Assembly: GCF_963853765.1 (NCBI RefSeq)
Contig: NC_088857.1
Coordinates: 11,532,001 to 11,596,000 of the forward strand
Length of the DNA: 64,000 nucleotides
Direction: 5' to 3'
Origin: Magallana gigas
Taxonomy: Eukaryota
Shown: one piece after another, positions 7,313-28,750 of the stretch
Layout of the letters: the number at the start of each line of letters is the position of its first letter
Position numbering within the stretch: the stretch's first letter is position 1
The notes under the pieces: model-generated
What the model was told of the DNA's origin: nothing
The model's input: only the letters and a program-made list of their open reading frames with translations
Database searches by the model: none
Program-made: the position numbers and the translations under genes

Positions 7313-10300
7313 TCAGAAACTCCATTCCTCTGTCACATTCATCTGCTCCATCGAGTTTATCACAGAATCTACTGCTTTATCTACAAAAGATGGCAGAATA
7401 CAGTGAATTATTACAGGAATTTTAGAGCTTTCTTTTCACTTTTTAAATTTCATTCACTGAAATGTGAACAAACTGTAAAGGTAAATACAAGTATATGATG
7501 CATACCACGGATGACAAGGGTATCTCAACTGTTTACAGTACATGTACTTTTAAACTAATGATAGAGTTATCCTATTTTATTGAAGTCAGAAATGGTAAAA
7601 TACATGTATTCGGTCAATACAAAACCCTTAACTTTTATCGTACTAACCATAAGAAACATGGCCAAAGAAGCCAACATACCATAAAATACATTGGCTAGAT
7701 TAGCCAGGTTTATTGGAATCAATGTAAGAGAAATTATGACACCCCTCTTCTTACTGTACTTACAGTCAGAAACATTGGCAAGGTTAGCCAGGTTTATTGG
7801 AATCGATGTAAGAGAAATTATGATGCCCTCTCTTCTTACTGTACTTACCGTCAGAAACATTGGATAGGTTAGCCAGGTTTATTGGAATCAATGTAAGAGA
7901 AATTATGATGCCCTCTCATCTTACTGCACCTACCATAAGAAACATTGGCTAGGATAGCCAGGTTTATTGGAATCAATGTAAGAGAAATTATGATGCCCTC
8001 TCGTCTTACTGTACTTACCGTCAGAAACATTGGCTAGGTTAGCCAGGTTTATTGGAATCGATGTAAGAGAAATTATGATACCCTCTCGTCTTACTGTACT
8101 TACCGTCAGAGACATTGGATAGGTTAGCCAGGTTTATTGGAATCAATGTAAGAGAAATTATGATGCCCTCTCATCTTACTGCACCTACCATCAGAAACAT
8201 TGGCTAGGTAAGCCAGGTTTATTGGAATCAATGTAAGAGAAATTATGATGCCCTCTCGTCTTACTGTACTTACCGTCAGAAACATTGGCTAGGTTAGCCA
8301 GGTTTATTGGAATCAATGTAAGAGAAATTATGATACCCTCTTGTCTTACTGTACTTACCGTCAGAAACATTGGCTAGGTTAGCCAGGTTTATTGGCGTCA
8401 GTGGCTGTAGGAGATTTGGCAGTGCCTCTGAGGACCTCTTCTTCAGGTGTTTAAACATTGGGTCTGATAACAAGCCCTCCGCTGATGGTCTGAAGAAAAT
8501 TTAGATATACTAATGAAAATGTACAAAGTAAATTTTTGTAGCTGCCCCTCTTGATGGAAGTTTTTGTGAACAAGACCCCAATTAGACATTTTGTATATCA
8601 GTATGATGGTTATTTATAAAACTCAGTTATAAATGAAAACAGTTCATAAGTTACTGATAGAAAGATCTTGTGTGTGTGTGTGTTGACTCCTCCAAAATTT
8701 CAAGAATAGAAGACACCGTAATGAATATTCAAACACATTAACCATACAAATAAATCAAAACCATGGAGAACTCAAATGTTGTACGTGTATCTGAATTAAA
8801 TTTTAATCTTACACAGTAACATGGCCTACATTTACCATGAAATAGCACACATCAGGTAGATTTCCTGATTCATACCTGCACTTTGGATTCTTCTCTAAAC
8901 ACCTGTCAATCAAGCTATGGAAATGGGAGGAGAATTTACGAGCCTTTGCTAAGGCAACAATATCAATTCCGCCATTCTCCAGCTCCGCATTGTGTTGAGC
9001 TGTAAATGTAAAAAGCAAGACAAGGAATAATTTAACAGCCACTCCCAACTTTAGAATCAATAAAGGCGGCACTAATTGATACATGTATCTATTCAATAAA
9101 GTACTACCGGTAGTAACAAAATTATTTCATCAAAGGCCAGTGTGAATTTCTATTGAGTAAGTAAAAATAGCTCACTGCACTATTTAATTACAATATTTCC
9201 TTTTTTTCGTGGAAAAATGGGGAAAATATGTAGCAATTTTAATTTTTGTGATTTTATGAGTTTCTTATAGAAAATACATGTAATACACAATATAATTTCT
9301 GAATATTCAGTATTTTGCGATTTGAAAGAGATCGCAAATGAAGCAAAAATTAGATCATTGCGAAAATTACTGGATATACAGTGTTATGTGTGAAGCCTTA
9401 GACTTGATGGAGGCCATGATTTTAATGACATACCATGCTCCTCTCCAGTGAGGTCTGAGATGGTTGTACAGTCCAGCAGCATTGGCTTAGTACCATTCAC
9501 TTTCTCAAGCAGCATCTATTCAAATATACAGCATATATATATATACATCCTAAATATAGTACAATTATTTTAAAGGGTGATGTATCTCAAACATGTTACA
9601 AACCTGAGTCACTGGCATGTCCTCAAACGGAGGATAGCCATTGGCCAGCTCCCAACTTGTGATTCCGAGGCTGTATATGTCTGATTTTGTGTCATATCCT
9701 GACAAATTCTAAAACAAAAATAAAATAATGTTAAAAACAGAATAATGTAGTTTTGTGTCATATCCTGACAAATTCTAAAACAAAAAAAGAGTAATACATG
9801 TATTAAAAACAGTTAAATAAATTAATGTTGTTTTGTATCACATCCAGACAAACTCTAAAACAAAAATAGAATAATATTATAAAAAAGTCAATAAATGTAG
9901 TTTTTGTGCATTAATAGAATAAATGTACTGCATACTGTTTTGAGGATTCATGAATTGGTCAACAGTGGCCTTACTCGTAAAATTGGTCATACTTCTCACT
10001 TTATTGAGCACATAGTGTTATACATCAACTCAATAACAAAATCCATGAAAGAAAATTACCAGTGTTCAATGAAAAATGATAAATCTACAGTACATGTATA
10101 TGAATTAATAAATTCATGGATTCTATTTAGTGTGTGTGATTGAGATGTTTTTACCTGCTCAAGGATTTCTGGACTGAGCCACTGCAAGTCGGCACTACAG
10201 GCCTCGGGGTAGTTATGAACCTGGTTCCACTTCCTGCCATGATGGAACATGTGGTAGACTTTGCGTAGGCCTGATAAACACACACTGCCATTGCCACCAA

Positions 10301-20500: not shown

Positions 20501-21510
20501 TTTTTGATGATTTTTAATAAAATTACACATTCATGTGAAAGAAATACAGTTGAAATCGTTAAAAGGGAATATATAAAAGATATCTTCATTGAACAATTAT
20601 CCCTTTTCACTCATAAAATTTCACAGGAATGAAAACAATTCTCTTACGGAGATTTATAATGGGAAATGTTTAAATCTTTTCTCCATTCGGAAGTACTCGG
20701 GATGCCTTGCGCAATTTTTTAACGTTATTATCCGGGCTTATTAATGGCTGATGCAATGCAAAATCTCCATATAGACTTACAATTTTGGGATAAGAGGGGG
20801 CGTTTCAAAACAGATAATCTGGACATTTTACATATTAGTGAATGAACGCAGTTTGAGCACAAAGGTATTTACTATTATTGAAATATCAGGCAAAAAGTGG
20901 TGGAAGCAAAAACTCAGACGGAGTATACAAAATCAAGTAAATTTAAAGGACTAAGTTAAACATGTAACGCAACAAGGAATTTATCAAACTCCAAAATCTT
21001 ATCTCTCACCTTCGAGTTTTGCTGAGAAATTTTAATTAAAATTCATCTTATTTCCATAAATTGGGTACAACACCATTATATAGCTTACTGCTAATTGGTA
21101 GCAAACCATCATCTCATTTCCATAATAAAGAAAGAAATATTCTATTCATATTAGTTTACCTTAATCTAACATTAGCGTTATTCGCGTGACAATTATTCCT
21201 GCAGATACTCTTGCATTTACACTTTATAATAAATTTGTTGATTTGAAAGTTAGGAAGTTAAAAAATATACGACAGAGGAAATTCGGTACGATGACAAATC
21301 AAAAATGCTTACATCCTCAACGGTTCCGTTCGTACGGTCTTTCCAACAGAAGTGCATCAGAGCATCGTCCGACTGGTAGACGTATACCATTCCCTTCCTC
21401 TTGTCAGGATGGACCATTTTACCCTTCATAAACATTTTACCGGCCCTGAATTCGACCAGATTTTTACTCTGGGAACGCCCGGTACTGCCAAACAATGCTC
21501 CTGAAGCCAT
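17503..21510 (-). CDS. ADRM1: Proteasomal ubiquitin receptor ADRM1/Rpn13, 10 coding exons
   Basis: Exons 21313-21510, 20308-20424, 20001-20130, 19792-19854, 19560-19647, 19091-19290, 18829-18852, 18435-18595, 17705-17807 and 17503-17594 splice in frame. Pru domain LVEFRAGKM…[28 protein letters not shown]…DLIIFPED…[11 protein letters not shown]…FFWMQEP; C-terminal [33 protein letters not shown]. Confidence 0.97.
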
Positions 21511-21609
21511 TTTTTCTTCGAAAAGTGTAGAGGCCGGTTCGATTTGCTCTTCTAAATACCGAAGAAGAGTCTTCCGCTTTAAGAAAACGTGTTCGTTTTA
21601 TCTAAAACT

Positions 21610-21617
21610 ACTTCCGG
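21610..21617 (+). promoter_or_regulatory. ETS-type motif (ACTTCCGG) in the transposon left end, between the ADRM1 and Myb start codons
   Basis: Exact ACTTCCGG. A mirror copy (CCGGAAGT, 26854-26861) lies upstream of the transposase ATG. Function is inferred only. Confidence 0.4.
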
Positions 21618-21667
21618 TAGATCTTCTGCCTCTTCCATCCCGCGAGCAGAAGAGACTGGAAAACAAT

Positions 21668-23792
21668 ATGGCGGATGATGGCGGGTAAGTAAAATTATGA
21701 AAAGATTTTCAAAAATGTTTATTATTAGTAGTAGTTAATCGGATAAAATTATCAACAATATGTATAAAATATGCATTAGTAATGTCAAAAAGATAATTAA
21801 CAGATTAATAAAGTATTTTAAGGTAGCAGTTAACCAGTTAACGTGGTTTATAAAAAGGGTTTCAAGTTTTGGCATGAGTGGAAAGTACAGCGAATGCGTG
21901 TATCGTTTAAATTATTGCTATGTTAATGCATTTGATTTAATGATTTTATTTTTTATAGATTCACGAATGTCAACGTTACTTTGGGGAACGGAAAACTTGT
22001 ATCTGTCCAAGTATCGCCAGAGTTGTTTGGGCACTTTACCTCATCAGGTTTTTATTCTTTAGCATACAATTAACGTGAACACATTTTTAAACATTACACA
22101 TGCATGTTTATTATAATACCTTATACCTATAATACTTGTATCTACAGGCACGTAGCATCGTTTTTGAAAGTGGGGGGGGGGGCAGACTCATCCAAAAAAT
22201 CATGACAAGCAAAAAAAAAAAAAAGAAAAAAAAAGGGAATTTTTTAAGTTTCCCAAAATCTTCAAATTCCTAATCCGGGGGGGGGGGGGGGGGGGGGGGA
22301 GGGGCTGGTGTAGTATAGCCTATAACTTCAATTTCACTTCTTATTTCCTTATTTTCAATTTTATTTTTTACATACTCCCAAAAAAGTGTGGGGGGGGGGC
22401 CAAAAATTGTTCCTGCGAGAAAAAGTGGGGGGGGGGGGGGCCAGGCCCCCCCTGATGCTACGCGCCTGATCTATTATAGATGTAATGTTAAGAAACAATT
22501 CTTACAATTAGAACTAATTCTACAAATTAAATAATAATTTAATATTTATTTTTTTATTAAGTTAATTTGTATTCATTTGTTATATAGAATATATATTTTT
22601 ATAACAGATCCTGATTTAAAACAGTTGGCTAAACAACTCATCATACAAGCAGCTATGGAGAAAGATAGTGAAGCAGAATGTGAAGAATTGCCAGGTATTT
22701 TTTCAGACATTATTTCTCCTTAAGTTTATAAAAAGGCATACTATCCTAAAGTCTGTCTCAAGATATTTTTGCCACACATTTTCTAAAATTATTCTATATC
22801 AAAATTCTTAAATTTTAATTTTATTTAATATTTTATTTATAAATACCTTTGGATTCAAATGATGTTCATTCAATAGCATGAAAAATCCAAAGATTTTCCC
22901 TTTAAATGCCCCCTCTACCTTGTCAGATTTCAATACACAGCTACATGTACAAATTAAAGGTCTACAGGGATTTTGAATTGCAAAAGAGATAAAAATACCC
23001 TGATCGTATATCATTGAAAAATTGTGCAAGGTAGTCCGAGTTAAACTTCCAAATGGAGAAAAGGTGTCAACATTTCCCATTATAAATCTCTGTAACAAAT
23101 CTGTTTTCAGTTTTTTAACTGATTTTTCTCTTGTCATTTTTGTAGACATTCCAACTGTTCCACAGACCCCAGAGAATTCACCGAAGCCTACACCATCAGG
23201 CATTTTTACATATGAACAAACTATCTTTTTAATTTCTGCCTACAAGGAGAGAAAAGAAAAGTTCTTATCACCCACTCACAAGAAAAAAGCACTGTGGCTA
23301 GAAATCACAGAAGAGTTAAACAAATGTTTTAAAACTGAGTTCACTGTGGCCCAAGTTGAAGGCAGATGGAAAACACAACTTAGTGCGTACAAGAGGCATC
23401 AAACCGACCAGGCTAAGTCAGGGAATGAAAGGAAAGAATTTCTGTATGAAGAGGAATTCCAGGATATCTTCAGTGATCGACATGATATAAATCCAAAGTT
23501 TGTGGTTTCATCTTTATCCTCAAGCTCAGATAGTGGAAGTTTCACTCAAGATGAGCCCTGCACAAGCTCAAGTTCTGGTGAGCCAGCAGGTATCACAGAT
23601 CCCCAGCCCAAAAAGAAAAGGAAAATTTCTTCCAGATCTAATTCTTCTCAAGTTATCCATTTTTTGGAAGATTATGTTGAAAATCAAAATAAAAAAAATG
23701 AAGAAAATATGAAAAAAATTGAGAAAATGCATGAGGAGAAAATGAAAATATTTAGTGGTTTCCTCTCAGTTTTTAAGAGTATGAAAGATTAA
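21668..23792 (+). CDS. Harbinger Myb/SANT(MADF)-like DNA-binding protein, 4 exons, 279 aa
   Basis: Exons 21668-21684, 21959-22047, 22608-22694 and 23146-23792 have phases 2/1/1 and total 840 nt; the exon 2 donor (GTTTTT) is weak. Trihelix/Myb-like segment FTYEQTIFLISAYKERKEKFLSPTHKKKALWLEITEELNKCFKTEFTVAQVEGRWKTQLSAYKR, then an S-rich linker, a PKKKRK NLS-like motif and a coiled-coil C-terminus. Confidence 0.85.
22145..22468. mobile_element. Poly-G/poly-A-rich MITE nested in intron 2 of the Harbinger Myb gene
   Basis: TIRs CAGGCACGTAGCATC / GATGCTACGCGCCTG (1 mismatch), with the direct repeat ATCTA on both sides. Confidence 0.8.
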
Positions 23793-24073
23793 AATATTCA
23801 TGTCTTCAAATCTCTGTTAAGCATTGAAATGTAGGTCTATGAATTCTGATGTAATGTTTTGATTTGTTTCTGCTTTATATGGTCTTTTTCCATCATGCTG
23901 TTTTCAAATATGGTATTTCATATTGATTTTCCAAACTTGTTGTATTTTTTAATTGATGTTTAGTTATTCACCAGTAACTGACTTTCCATTTCAAGATTTG
24001 AAAATTATCTGTAATTTATAGAACTGCTATGTTGGGTGCAACAATTTGATGTGTTTACTATTTTCTTTTACAG

Positions 24074-24759
24074 GATATGCATATTTATGCCACTTGCCTC
24101 CAGAAATAATATGCAAAATATTGACATACATTCCAATTCCAGAGTTGTACCATTCTGTATCTAAAGTTTGCAGTTCCATGAATTGTCTTTTTAAGAGTGG
24201 CCTTGTATGGAATTCAATAACTGACTTGAATTTTTTCAATGAAGGAATGAAAGATATATTCACTGTAGAATTTTTGAAACTTTTTGGAAATTGTGTTAAC
24301 CTTACCATGGATGCAACACTTCTGCAAGATTGTGATTTTTTGGGTAGTTTCAAAAATTTGAAATGTTTGGATATCAGGGGTTCCAAAAACGAAAATATTT
24401 GCAATGAAAACATTGTTAAAAATTTATCTAAGTGCAGATCTATGGAGAAACTCTTCATTAGCAGTTTGCCAAACTTGAGTGATGATGGTCTGTTGTTATT
24501 ATCTAAGGAGATGGGGGGAACACTGCAGTATTTACAAATTCGTAACTCTGCAGAGATCAGGCCAGAAACTTTTCAGGTTTTGATGAAAAATCTAAAGTGT
24601 ATTAAGGCCATCAGTGTGACTCCTTCTGGAGATTATGAAAAGTGGGCAAAAGTTCTAAATGAAAATGCTGTAAGGTGCAGTTTTGGGCATGAAATTCTTG
24701 ATTTTGTTCCAAAGCGATATCTTGTATATGACAGAATGTTTTACTCTCTGTTGCCCTAA
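24074..24759 (+). CDS. F-box plus leucine-rich-repeat (FBXL-like) exon inside the Harbinger element
   Basis: Stop-free frame 24046-24759. F-box-like LCHLPPEIICKILTYIPIPELYHSVSKVCSSMNCL, then LRR-like repeats (NLKCLDIRGS, SMEKLFISSLPNLSDDGL, TLQYLQIRNSAEI, CIKAISV). A strong acceptor TTTTCTTTTACAG ends at 24073; an in-frame ATG at 24049 is an alternative start. Confidence 0.8.
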
Positions 24760-25217
24760 ATGATTGTTAAAAATTGTCTGTGGAAGTTGAAGTGTGATTT
24801 AACATGCCCTTTAGTGGGCTTTTTCAGTCGCTGTATGTGAATATGTATGCGAGATTCAAGCGATATTCTTTATTTTTTAAATGCTAATTAAGCCAATATG
24901 TGATTTGTTTTTCCATAATATTGATCTCAGGTGGTTTTTAAAAAATATATTTATGTTTATAAGCATCAAGAAGATGATTGTTTTGAATAATACATTTATT
25001 ATATGTTTTTTATATAATAAAACAGTTTTTTACATGAATAAGATATGCATTGCTTTATTTTAAAAGAAGAATACACTTTGGTTTGTTCCATTAATTAATC
25101 CAATGTGTGAAAATGATTCAGAAAAAATTTCTAACACAACGTATACCAAATTTTCATTGCCAAACTGATTTCTTTTACATATATATGGTTAATTTTAAGT
25201 ACCGGTACATGCAGATT

Positions 25218-26814
25218 TTAGGTGATAGCCAACTGTCGTGTAAGTAATTGTCTCTTTAACTGTCCTTCTGCATCATTTTCAAACATTGGAATAATTAAAG
25301 GAACCTGCTGAGGGTCATTGTCAAAATGCTCATCAAGTTCGTCTTGGTTCAGGATACAAATGTTATGTAGGATGCAAGCTGTTATAATAGCCTTGACAAC
25401 ATAAGAAATGTCATTCATTTCAACAAATTGGAGACGCCGAAATCTGCCTTTCAATATGCCGAATGAATTTTCGATGATTACTCTGGTACTTGATAAAATC
25501 TGGTTGAACTTAATTTGATCCCTAGTAAGGTTTCCTCTATTTCTGTATGGAGTAATCAGCCACCGCTTGCACGGATATGCCCCATCACCTAACAAATGGC
25601 ACTGACCACAAAGAATTGGGCCTCTTTGCCTCAATGGAGAATTTTGAAAAACACGAGCATCATGCACTCGTCCTGGCCATCCACAGAAAATGTCTGTAAA
25701 TCTTTTATCTCCTCTGCACACTGCTTGAAGAATGACAGAGTGAAATTTTTTCCTATTAAAATAATCATTTGAATGTCCACTAGGGGGTTTAATGCGTATA
25801 TGTGTAGAGTCGATTGCTCCAATCACACCAGGGAAGTTCTTTTTTATCTCAAATTCATTGTTTACAGTCTGCAAATCATTTGGCCAAATCACAAATTTTT
25901 GAAGAAAGTATTTTTGGAAACATCTAACAACCTTCTGTTGTGGGAATGGAATGTCGATTCAGATACATTAAATCGATCTGCAATTGACCGAATTGTTTCT
26001 TGTGATCCTATGTACCACAGCATCATCAGTAAATCTTTTTCATGTGAAATTTGAGGTCGTCCAGCAGCTGGTTCTCTTAGTAGTAGTTCTGGAATATGCT
26101 GAATATTTTCCAATATAGCTTCGAATGTAGTTTTTGAAACACGAAAGAAGGTCTTGAATGTGTCTAAGGAATATCTTGAAACAACATCTTGCACAAAGCG
26201 TTCCACTTTATATCGTTTTCTTTGCTCCTGTCTGAAAACAAAGTTATTAATTAATTAAATTTTAATAAATTCTTGCATATTGATAGATTGTTGAATATCT
26301 TCAAATAATTTTTGTAGGAATTAGCAGAAATGTAATTTAACATTAGGTGCTATGATGACAAGCCTTAATAAATTTATGACATAGAAGTACAGGCATGTAG
26401 CATCAGGGGAAATCAGTGAAATTTAAGTTATAGGTAAACTTGCCCCCCCCCCCCCCCCCCGGATTATTATTTTAAGATTTTTGGATGACGATGCCCCCCC
26501 CCCCCCCCCCCCCCCGACTTTCAAAAACGATGTACGTGCCTGAATTATTTATAATTCAAATCAGATAAAGATAAGGTGATTCATAATATTGTGTATGTTA
26601 TTCCTTGTATTTTTTAAATGTAGACTACACATGAAAGCATTAACAATCGCTATGATGTGTGAATAAAAAGCATATAAAATTACTAAGTCCCTTACATATC
26701 ACTGCAAGCTGCAAATAGTGTAACAAATGAAAATTCTTCATCTGGCAAGTCAAAGTCTTCATCCTCAGTCATTATAATTATTGCAGCGCTAACTAAACAT
26801 CGTTTCGACGCCAT
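25218..26814 (-). pseudogene. HARBI1-like DDE transposase (DDE_Tnp_4), 2 exons, one 1-bp frameshift in this sequence
   Basis: Exon 1 is 26696-26814 (MASKRCLV…, GTAAG donor) and exon 2 is 25218-26231. HTH region (LWYIGSQETIRSIADRFNVSEST) and catalytic motifs GAIDSTHI, LLGDGAYP, RVIIENSFGILKGRFRRL and LHNICI are present. The spliced length is 1133 nt; adding one T to the run at 25918-25920 gives a 377-aa ORF (LLDVFQKYFLQKFVIWPND). Confidence 0.88.
26390..26542. mobile_element. Short MITE of the same family as 22145-22468, opposite orientation, in the transposase intron
   Basis: TIRs CAGGCATGTAGCATC / GATGTACGTGCCTG. The reverse complement begins CAGGCACGTACATCGTTTTTGAAAGT, matching the 22145 copy. 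Flanks AAGTA / AATTA. Confidence 0.75.
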
Positions 26815-28750
26815 ATTGAATCAGAAGATCACTGTTCGATTTAGCAAGAGAAACCGGAAGTTGAAAGATGACATTTTCCTCTTCTAGGAGGTGCAAATCG
26901 AACCGGCCTTAGAAGGGTAAAGTTAGAGAGTTTCCGATCTTTATATATTTTTTTTGTTAACTTGTACCAATAACGATTCGCGGCGCTGAGTAGTTACGAT
27001 TGTTTATGAGTCAAGTTTGGATGACTTCATCGAAGCTGTGTGTTCTCTCCTTGTCACATGCTAAATTCAGCATCCAAATTCCTCACAGTTGTTTAGAGCA
27101 ATTAAGAGTTCCCAGCAATTAAGAGTCCGAATGAAGTTCTAATATTAGAAGATTTTCTATGGTGTCATACTTTTTTTCATGTATTTAATGTCCGTGTGGG
27201 CGTTCCCTTAGTCAACTAGCTCTTAATCACATTATTTTATACTTTCTTTAAGCCCAACTTTATTGGAATTGAGACAGAAATCTTGAACGGTGGTTAACCC
27301 AGTCACAAACAGTTCAATTACGCAACGATTCTGCTTAGTTAAGCAGTTAACTTTTTGCATAACTGACCTTTTTATGAAGAACTGTAAAAACATATCTACC
27401 TGTACAATAAGATACAAGACATTGCATACTCATTAACTATATAAAATCTTGATTTTTCAACGTGCATGCAGCTAGCCTCAGCGATGCGAAAACGTGCAAC
27501 CTGTTAACATATTAAAATTAAAACTCAGCTTCTTTTTTACACATTCAATTTTTCTCTCTGAATATACCAATTTAAGGACTAGGGAATCATTCTTTGACTT
27601 TTATGAGGTAATCATTACAGTCGGGACCTTGATCAAATAAAAAAAAAAGCCAAAGAAAACGTATTTGAAATATTTTAAAGTTCCAAATGTTGAACAGATT
27701 GTAAGAGCAGTACGAATAGATAATGTCCCCCGAGAAGAGTTTGAGTGTTTGAAACAATTTTTGACCATATAAACGAATACATTAAAAGTTTTTCTTTATG
27801 AGACCTCATTTCACGAAGAGGACTCTTAACCCTCCCCCAAAAAGTACTTATGATCTTTTCAACAGTAAATGTTGATCACGATCACATGTGTCGGTCAATT
27901 ATCAGCTTATATTTGTTTTGTTAAAAAAAATCTTGAATCGCATCTGTCCTCCTATTTAGAGTTTTTAAAAAGAGACCCGCTCTTTCCATATTTTAAGCAT
28001 TCGCATGTTACAAAAGTATAATAAAAATAACCAATATCATTTATTCACATTTATTCGAATATCACGAAAAGTAAGTTGATGTTGACACCCATTAAGACAA
28101 CAAAATACAATATACATCCAAAATGTTACTGTTTGCAGTCTATATAGGCCATGTTTACACCAATCACATAGACATATTTGAAAGTTATGTAAATGGGGGT
28201 GGGGGCTACTTAAAGCCATTTGCCATGCAAAAAATTAAAATGAATAAACAAACAAACTACATGTACTTCACCTAGCCTCAAATAATTTTAATCCGTCGTT
28301 GTGGTGGGGGGCTCCCAAGACGCCCCCCCCTTTTGTCACGTTTCTAAAAAAATAAAGTGCTGTCATTTCAATTCATTCTAAAATTTTAATCAGTCCTCGA
28401 TTGTTTTGTTCAGGTATTGCCGCTAGCTGCTGCAGGTTACTGAGTGTGTGGCCACTGGGTGGTGAGATGTCAGGACAGCTCTCAATGTGTTCTTGAGACA
28501 ATAATCAATGGTAGAAAGACACACCCTATTTGGCAGAAATGTCGAAAAGAATAAACATGCCATCATAACACGATCCCGAACCATTAAAGACGTTGGTGAT
28601 TTTATTTTTCTTTGTGTCTTTTTATTTATTTATTTATTTATTTATTTGTTTGTTTTTTAATTGCTTCTTCAGCTTGATAAGTACATGTGCATACATTACA
28701 AGACTATATAATGTCTTAAATTTAATCGGTATGGTTGTATGTATTTTTAA

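Follow-up and report, generated by a model that had tools for sequence, protein, structure and literature searches.

A conserved F-box/leucine-rich-repeat exon in a mobile PIF/Harbinger transposon of Magallana gigas is probably an alternative end of its Myb gene

How does an F-box protein come to be encoded between the two genes of a Harbinger transposon, and is it a third gene, a captured host fragment or a part of one of the canonical genes? The question is raised by a PIF/Harbinger element in a 64,000-nucleotide stretch of the Magallana gigas genome (assembly GCF_963853765.1, contig NC_088857.1, positions 11,532,001 to 11,596,000 of the forward strand), which we call the window and whose positions are used throughout. 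An earlier reading of the letters of the window, made without database searches and referred to here as the original prediction, described the element as a three-frame Harbinger, with an F-box/leucine-rich-repeat (LRR) frame in addition to a transposase and a Myb/SANT gene, and suggested that this frame is a maintained part of the family. Our results suggest a somewhat different organization. We put a rough probability of 0.6 on the explanation that the element is a young Harbinger copy of an old bivalve clade in which the accessory Myb/SANT gene has two alternative C-terminal ends, one of them being supplied by the F-box/LRR exon.

The window region is a genuine, mobile PIF/Harbinger transposon. 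Its terminal inverted repeats (TIRs), which are perfect over 17 bp and extend to 22 bp at 91% identity, and the TAG that flanks them on both sides are where the original prediction had placed them (Table 1), and the two canonical genes that it had recognized are also borne out, one by a minus-strand match to DDE_Tnp_4 (PF13359; 121.5 bits, E 3e-35) and the other by a spliced Myb gene. The assembly that contains the window comprises 564 Mb and 10 large contigs, with the window at C5:11532001-11596000; when it was searched as a whole, a second full copy was found on another chromosome (G000:C10:36338906-36344121), which is 98% identical to the window copy, has identical termini and lies in unrelated flanks with a GAT duplication on both sides; a partial copy is present on C4. 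Contigs assembled from RNA libraries of other individuals contain a third insertion site, with CGA on both sides, and a fourth flank joined to the element termini. The C10 copy and the further flanks with 3-bp duplications thus indicate that the element is mobile and young, with sites that differ between individuals. With its DDE_Tnp_4 transposase, separate Myb/SANT trihelix gene, short TIRs, 3-bp target-site duplications and several copies at different sites, the element resembles the canonical two-gene systems such as zebrafish Harbinger3_DR and rice Ping/Pong. It differs from them by the extra F-box/LRR exon between the convergent genes, which is probably used in a second Myb isoform, and by the sequence, although not the length, of its duplications, which are TAG, GAT and CGA at the three sites whereas the usual PIF/Harbinger duplication is TWA.

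The defects of the two reference copies are complementary. In the window copy the transposase is frameshifted, one A being absent after 25917; this A, and with it an open transposase frame of 345 amino acids, is present in the C10 copy and in the RNA-library contigs. The C10 copy in turn has a stop in the Myb exon (TTA to TGA at the position equal to 23317 of the window). Neither the frameshift nor the stop is present in the RNA-library contigs of other individuals, and the F-box exon is open in both reference copies. It had been remarked in the original prediction that the F-box frame is intact while nearby introns have gained MITEs (miniature inverted-repeat transposable elements), and this holds: the Myb and transposase introns each contain a MITE-like repeat with long poly-G/poly-C tracts that has more than 40 copies in the genome. 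Since both full copies share the two MITE insertions, the element transposed after gaining them; in the C10 copy 127 bp are missing from the first of the two, in Myb intron 2.

The uninterrupted exon between the convergent 3′ ends of the two genes has the features of an FBXL protein, namely an F-box motif and a C-terminal LRR solenoid, together with SKP1 binding in silico. It scores above the Pfam cut-offs for both F-box-like (PF12937; 29.8 bits, cut-off 24.3) and F-box (PF00646; 26.9 bits, cut-off 20.5), and its homologues reach F-box scores of up to 45.9 bits. An AlphaFold2 model based on 12 homologues (mean predicted local distance difference test score, pLDDT, 87.7; predicted template-modelling score, pTM, 0.83) predicts three F-box helices followed by about six strand-helix leucine-rich repeats, and the best structural matches of this model in Foldseek are SKP2 (E 4e-7), FBXL17 (TM 0.6), FBXL2, COI1, FBXL3, KDM2B, FBXL15 and SKIP19, all at sequence identities of 13-19%. 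The protein therefore resembles cellular FBXL proteins (SKP2, FBXL15, FBXL17, FBXL2 and plant SKIP19) in its N-terminal F-box, short LRR solenoid and predicted canonical interface with SKP1. In contrast to them, and apart from the low identity, it is encoded by a transposon, is probably fused to a Myb domain, is without a host orthologue in the oyster genome, and has a conserved C-terminal cap motif of its own (W-A..N...FGH.I.D.VP..L...R..YS). The LRR and this cap are the best conserved parts of the protein across clades.

The co-folding with SKP1 that had been proposed as a check gave a score of 0.79 in three of three runs, whereas the best of three controls scored 0.02; at least 76% of the contacts are common to the runs, with a partner pLDDT of at least 75, and the predicted interface is the canonical one, in which residues 96-156 of SKP1 contact residues 3-36 of the F-box. 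The SKP1 sequence used was the 162-amino-acid protein P0077, taken as molluscan, which is about 90% identical to the central SKP1 exon of the oyster gene at C5:51108841. The mark used for these co-folds is reached by 51 of 78 solved complexes and by 2 of 108 mismatched pairs. Complexes of SKP1 with an F-box have been solved many times, so that the score is best read as a likeness and not as proven binding, and the pass may come from the predictor's memory of them.

Is this exon a regular part of the family? Whole F-box/LRR matches in the oyster genome are found in the window and C10 copies, and further intact frames are found on C9, C2, C1, C4 and C8; the list is completed by two relics on C8, both decayed, and by a fragment on C3. 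In every intact case the frame and a Harbinger transposase are arranged tail to tail, as seen in the sequence on C9, C2 (L045) and C1 (L043) and by coordinates on C4 and C8. The relics (G000:C8:269548-270188 and C8:40541920-40542467; L050 and L051) have 71-75% DNA identity and many stops, with no recognizable Myb or transposase near them. A profile search of 1.84 billion representative proteins returned 49 clusters, and among the ten whose genomic context was viewed the order Myb, F-box/LRR and inverted DDE_Tnp_4 recurs in Ostrea edulis (L055), at two loci of Pecten maximus (L071 and L072), in Mizuhopecten yessoensis (L074), in Ruditapes philippinarum (L075, mapped from the isoform P0054) and in the contigs L080 and L081, which had been picked by F-box similarity alone. 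An exception is an intact F-box/LRR frame of 242 amino acids in two large contigs (L076/L077, ENA ERZ25069870, positions 8001-8729) that has no Myb or transposase within 8 kb and may be a domesticated copy. The F-box module is thus linked near-exclusively to Harbinger transposases, and loci with the same layout, which the original prediction had named as a check, exist both in this genome and in other bivalves, the C10 copy having a different target-site duplication.

In a midpoint-rooted tree of 14 transposases, made without an outgroup, carriers of the F-box exon stand on both sides of the deepest split, across which the transposases are only about 35% identical, and a lineage without the exon is nested among the carriers. 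Absence is shown for one member of that lineage, L048, where the 640-bp gap between the Myb gene and the transposase leaves no room for the exon. Carriers across the deepest split together with a nested lineage without the exon suggest that the module is ancestral and was secondarily lost. A capture from the host was also considered and rejected: host F-box genes match over the 45-residue motif only, and no close FBXL parent was found in the whole-genome search.

The comparison of the oyster copy with the O. edulis copy indicates that the module is conserved and under purifying selection, in agreement with the suggestion that it is a maintained part of the family. The ratio of non-synonymous to synonymous substitution rates (dN/dS) is 0.27 for the F-box exon, with a bootstrap 95% interval of 0.17-0.42 and 0 of 500 replicates at or above 1. 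The LRR part has a ratio of 0.24 (interval 0.14-0.39) and the first 48 codons, which span the F-box motif, one of about 0.42. Values calculated without a bootstrap are about 0.08 for the transposase and about 0.11 for the whole of Myb exon 4, and the tail of that exon past the internal donor discussed below has a ratio of 0.17 (interval 0.06-0.40). Between the window and C10 copies the coding exons differ at 14 of 2660 sites and the non-coding sequence outside the MITEs at 24 of 1464, which is threefold less in the coding part (p = 5e-4); the F-box exon alone has 4 differences in 686 (p = 0.04). These four differences are all non-synonymous and, judged against the commonest allele in public runs (P0205), all private to the window copy, which fits a window copy that is now decaying.

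The original prediction regarded the F-box frame as a separate third gene, and it is on this point that our results depart from it. Of the 12 open frames examined, which represent 10 distinct families, 8 (from 6 families) are without an in-frame ATG before the F-box, and 10 have a strong polypyrimidine-AG acceptor at a distance of 10-40 nt upstream of the motif. Proteins in which Pfam recognizes Myb_DNA-bind_4 and an F-box in one chain are listed for Ruditapes (XP_060565376 and its isoform), Pecten (XP_033729762 and XP_033729909) and Mizuhopecten (XP_021340221). When mapped to the DNA, these RefSeq models exit the Myb exon through an internal donor, omit its remainder together with the stop, and continue in the F-box exon. 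The window has two candidate donors at the corresponding place (Table 1). The donor of Pecten L071 (AG, GTGAGG, after a Ser-rich linker) is homologous to the one at 23577/23578, and since both candidates and the acceptor are in phase 1 the join would be in frame. In O. edulis L055 both donors and the acceptor are conserved, with unchanged phase. The C9 copy (L052, about 9205) has a GC donor (AG, GCAAGT) and an acceptor that are both in phase 2, and the two sit where Pecten L072 has an annotated GC-AG intron (11605/12155); the Myb-to-F-box intron of one clade appears to be GC-AG (AG, GCAAG) in scallop and oyster copies alike. A fusion through another donor, at 23778/23779 just before the Myb stop, was considered and rejected, the donor being absent in O. 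edulis and destroyed in C10. In a public contig of 2.5 kb (L078) Myb introns 2 and 3 are spliced out and the sequence goes on through the F-box exon, which places the Myb exons and the F-box exon in one transcription unit. Because both alternative ends are under purifying selection, the splicing would be alternative and not constitutive. Taken together, the sequence comparisons indicate that the F-box exon is probably an alternative 3′ exon of the Myb gene.

The RNA evidence is mixed. Reads of four runs were mapped to the window, the raw-read runs being sampled at about 1% (about 1 read in 100). In two stranded polyA libraries, all reads over 24235-24990 have their first mate on the minus strand, whereas for a neighbouring host exon of the minus strand the first mates map to the plus strand, and from this opposite orientation it follows that the F-box exon is transcribed in sense. 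Between 23479 and 24045 there are 0 reads where about 20 are expected (probability of 0 reads about 3e-9), which fits the removal of the proposed intron. Several observations weigh against an alternatively spliced Myb gene. Coverage in the polyA libraries nearly fails over 24074-24234 and over the Myb exon as well, and it begins abruptly near 24235, within the exon, past the F-box motif and near an in-frame ATG at 24247, which could reflect an internal start with an LRR-only product or a sampling effect. The joint 23577>24074 was not seen in any oyster read or contig of the four runs at this sampling, and in all oyster contigs the sequence between the Myb exon and the F-box exon is continuous and unspliced. 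The X1 and X2 contigs, described as 'metatranscriptomic', have an even depth across both genes, flanks included, as DNA would have, so that some of the 'RNA' contigs may be DNA. The RefSeq fusions are computed gene models, the window family is an exception in having an in-frame ATG, at 24049 upstream of the acceptor, and the reservation on the co-fold score and the four private differences given above point in the same direction. The protein search with the Myb exon as query was limited to matches of at most 1.75 times its length, a limit outside which the predicted fusion of about 420 amino acids falls.

These observations bear most directly on the alternative that the exon is a stand-alone third gene after all, with its own transcript from the ATG at 24049 or with an LRR-only product from a start near 24235. 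This is what the sense reads over the exon, with almost none on the Myb exon, would lead one to expect, and the RefSeq annotation of O. edulis lists the exon alone, as a partial protein. We consider it unlikely. Most of the homologous elements lack a start codon before the F-box, and 10 of the 12 frames have a strong acceptor there; fused models exist in three species, and L078 points to co-transcription with the Myb exons. An LRR-only product would moreover lose the F-box, yet the F-box motif is itself conserved, as its dN/dS shows.

If the Myb gene does have two alternative ends, the following mechanism can be proposed, in which we infer the splice in the oyster, the binding of SKP1 in vivo and the target. 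When the internal 5′ splice site is read through, the product would be a canonical Harbinger DNA-binding protein with a short C-terminal helix. Harbinger Myb proteins bind the element ends, import the transposase and recruit it (PMC9392472), and the nuclease-binding region of ALP2, HDP2, NAIF1 and the Ping Myb protein is C-terminal (PMC7282668); a C-terminal region of this kind is present here, and the helix would fall within it. When the internal donor is spliced to the 686-nt exon, this tail would be replaced by the F-box and about six leucine-rich repeats. The fusion would retain the Myb domain and would thus sit on the element's own DNA, where its F-box would bind SKP1 and bring in a ubiquitin ligase of the CUL1 type, while the LRR and the conserved cap would present a substrate. 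Candidates for the substrate are the transposase complex, for turnover or self-limitation, and a host chromatin or silencing protein. That the cap is highly conserved speaks for a partner that is itself conserved and against a rapid arms race. In its full form the proposal is that the alternatively spliced Myb-F-box/LRR protein is a substrate receptor tethered to the transposon ends of a bivalve-wide Harbinger clade, through which a SKP1-CUL1-F-box (SCF) ligase would ubiquitylate either a host chromatin or silencing protein, as anti-silencing in cis, or the element's own transposase complex, for self-limitation or disassembly; it would then be the first cullin-RING ligase adaptor known from a eukaryotic DNA transposon. 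We offer this proposal tentatively, with somewhat less than even confidence.

Repressor isoforms of the P element arise by alternative splicing, and this analogy prompts a reading in which the F-box isoform is a short-lived dominant-negative repressor that occupies Myb sites without transposase, the F-box serving only to destabilize it and there being no substrate. Such an isoform would indeed be without the C-terminal part to which the nuclease binds in related systems (PMC7282668). A mere instability tag would have no need of the LRR and cap, which are however the best conserved parts of the protein and are under purifying selection (dN/dS 0.24), and we regard this reading as rather doubtful.

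The use of alternative last exons, in which exons 1-3 are spliced directly to the F-box exon and exon 4 is skipped, would yield a small F-box/LRR protein whose only part in common with the Myb protein is the N-terminal 60 residues. The donor at 22694/22695 and the acceptors at 23145/23146 and 24073/24074 are all in phase 1, hence this product would also be in frame. It is an improbable explanation, given that every annotated bivalve fusion keeps the Myb domain and has its donor inside the Myb exon, and that no such joint occurs among the reads and contigs of the four runs. The notion that the exon merely travels along as a passenger, having been transduplicated from part of a host FBXL gene and being without function for the element, is in keeping with the capture of host fragments by DNA transposons and with the four non-synonymous differences between the reference copies, but it is largely refuted and very improbable, because the exon, far from being confined to this copy or near-identical to a host gene, has no host parent in the oyster genome, is retained in four bivalve families beside transposases as divergent as those described above, and has a dN/dS well below 1.

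Table 1. Features of the PIF/Harbinger element in the window, in order of position.
Feature	Position	Strand	Basis and remarks
Target-site duplication TAG, left	21528-21530	.	Matched by TAG beyond the right TIR
PIF/Harbinger element, whole	21531-26909		5379 bp; perfect TIRs and flanking TAG
Left TIR, 17 bp, perfect	21531-21547	+	Terminus same in the C10 copy
Myb exon 1, predicted	21668-21684	+	ATG, 5 codons and 2 nt; matches the N-terminus of the Crassostrea virginica RefSeq homologue P0180
Myb exon 2	21959-22047	+	Joint 22047>22608, GT..AG, in X1, X2, L078 and L079; spliced protein P0179
MITE-like repeat with poly-G tracts, in Myb intron 2	~22143-22470	.	>40 genomic copies at 84-88% identity
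Myb exon 3	22608-22694	+	Joints 22047>22608 and 22694>23146
Myb exon 4	23146-23792	+	Myb/SANT trihelix domain, Ser-rich linker, KKKRK, C-terminal helix; stop 23790-23792
Candidate donors, phase 1	23577/23578 (CTG, GTGAGC) or 23589/23590 (CAG, GTATCA)	+	Frame arithmetic
Predicted alternative intron	23578-24073	+	Acceptor polypyrimidine tract and ACAG ending at 24073
F-box/LRR exon	24074-24759	+	686 nt, open; stop 24757-24759; between the convergent Myb and transposase genes
Transposase exon 2, helix-turn-helix and DDE_Tnp_4	25218-26231	-	Frameshifted in the window copy
Transposase intron	26232-26695	-	Joint 26231>26696, CT..AC ends, in X1 and X2 contigs
MITE in transposase intron	~26380-26545		Inverted partner of the Myb intron 2 repeat
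Transposase exon 1	26696-26814	-	ATG 26814-26812, read from the sequence
Right TIR, 17 bp, perfect	26893-26909	-	Inverted match to the left TIR
Target-site duplication TAG, right	26910-26912	.	Sequence

Exon 4 of the Myb gene in the window has only sub-threshold Pfam Myb matches (17 bits), while it is 45% identical to the Myb exon of Pecten, whose RefSeq product P0024 scores 29.3 bits for Myb_DNA-bind_4 (cut-off 27). Its identity to the C9 protein, for which the score is 59 bits, is 27%. Named relatives of the protein are found in Crassostrea virginica (76% identity), Saccostrea cucullata and Ostrea edulis. For Myb introns 2 and 3 there is support from GT..AG joints and from the spliced protein P0179 (20 public runs), and intron 1 is retained in every RNA-library contig seen. 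On the side of the transposase, a few reads of run X22 over 25180-25935 share the mate orientation of the F-box reads and are hence antisense to the transposase; transcription that runs on from the Myb/F-box unit into the convergent gene may account for them.

Two further observations concern the surroundings of the genes. A 9-bp motif (ACTTCCGGT / ACCGGAAGT) occurs in inverted orientation at 21610-21618 and 26853-26861, upstream of both inward-facing genes, the left occurrence being 79 bp and the right one 48 bp away from the respective end of the element; it is similar to an ETS-type promoter motif, and a Myb binding site is another possibility. The element is inserted 20 bp upstream of the start codon of a host gene on the minus strand (ATG 21510; 21253-21530). 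The first coding exon of this gene corresponds to an Rpn13/ADRM1 Pru domain (PF04683, 57 bits) and is well expressed in the polyA runs.

As the original prediction had supposed, no F-box in a Harbinger or in any bivalve transposon was found in the literature searched, a scope outside which Repbase and Dfam lie. A 2025 survey of F-box genes and transposable-element domains makes no mention of Harbinger, Myb or molluscs in its main text (PMC12062965). There are nevertheless other systems with which the oyster element can be compared.

Viral F-box proteins such as polerovirus P0 and the poxvirus ankyrin/PRANC proteins are likewise cases of a selfish element with its own SCF adaptor. No sequence similarity to the oyster protein beyond the F-box was found, no search aimed at it having been made, and the match of the oyster protein to PRANC in Pfam is faint (E 0.18); the viral proteins act in trans on host defence proteins without being tethered to DNA. 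The VANC anti-silencing protein of VANDAL21 is an accessory product that acts on its own transposon family, and the P-element repressor is a splice isoform; neither has homology to the oyster protein and their activities are different, so that the comparison is one of analogy only. In the pairs ALP1/ALP2 with PRC2, HDP1/HDP2 with a histone acetyltransferase complex, and HARBI1/NAIF1, too, an adaptor of the Harbinger Myb type connects DNA or transposase to a protein-modifying complex (PMC7282668 and PMC9392472). Those, however, are immobile, domesticated single-copy genes, whereas the oyster adaptor lies inside mobile copies and its complex would be an SCF ubiquitin ligase.

The Harbinger transposon is the textbook case of a two-protein element, and a conserved third module would link its DNA-binding subunit to the ubiquitin system. 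If this is true, a DNA transposon would have a novel means of controlling itself or its own chromatin. Harbinger Myb proteins have repeatedly become adaptors of chromatin complexes, in plants and in vertebrates, and the oyster element raises the possibility that the adaptor function may pre-exist in the mobile element. The system is also tractable: its copies are young and transcribed, their sites are polymorphic between individuals, and intact frames of all three coding parts are available across the two reference copies.

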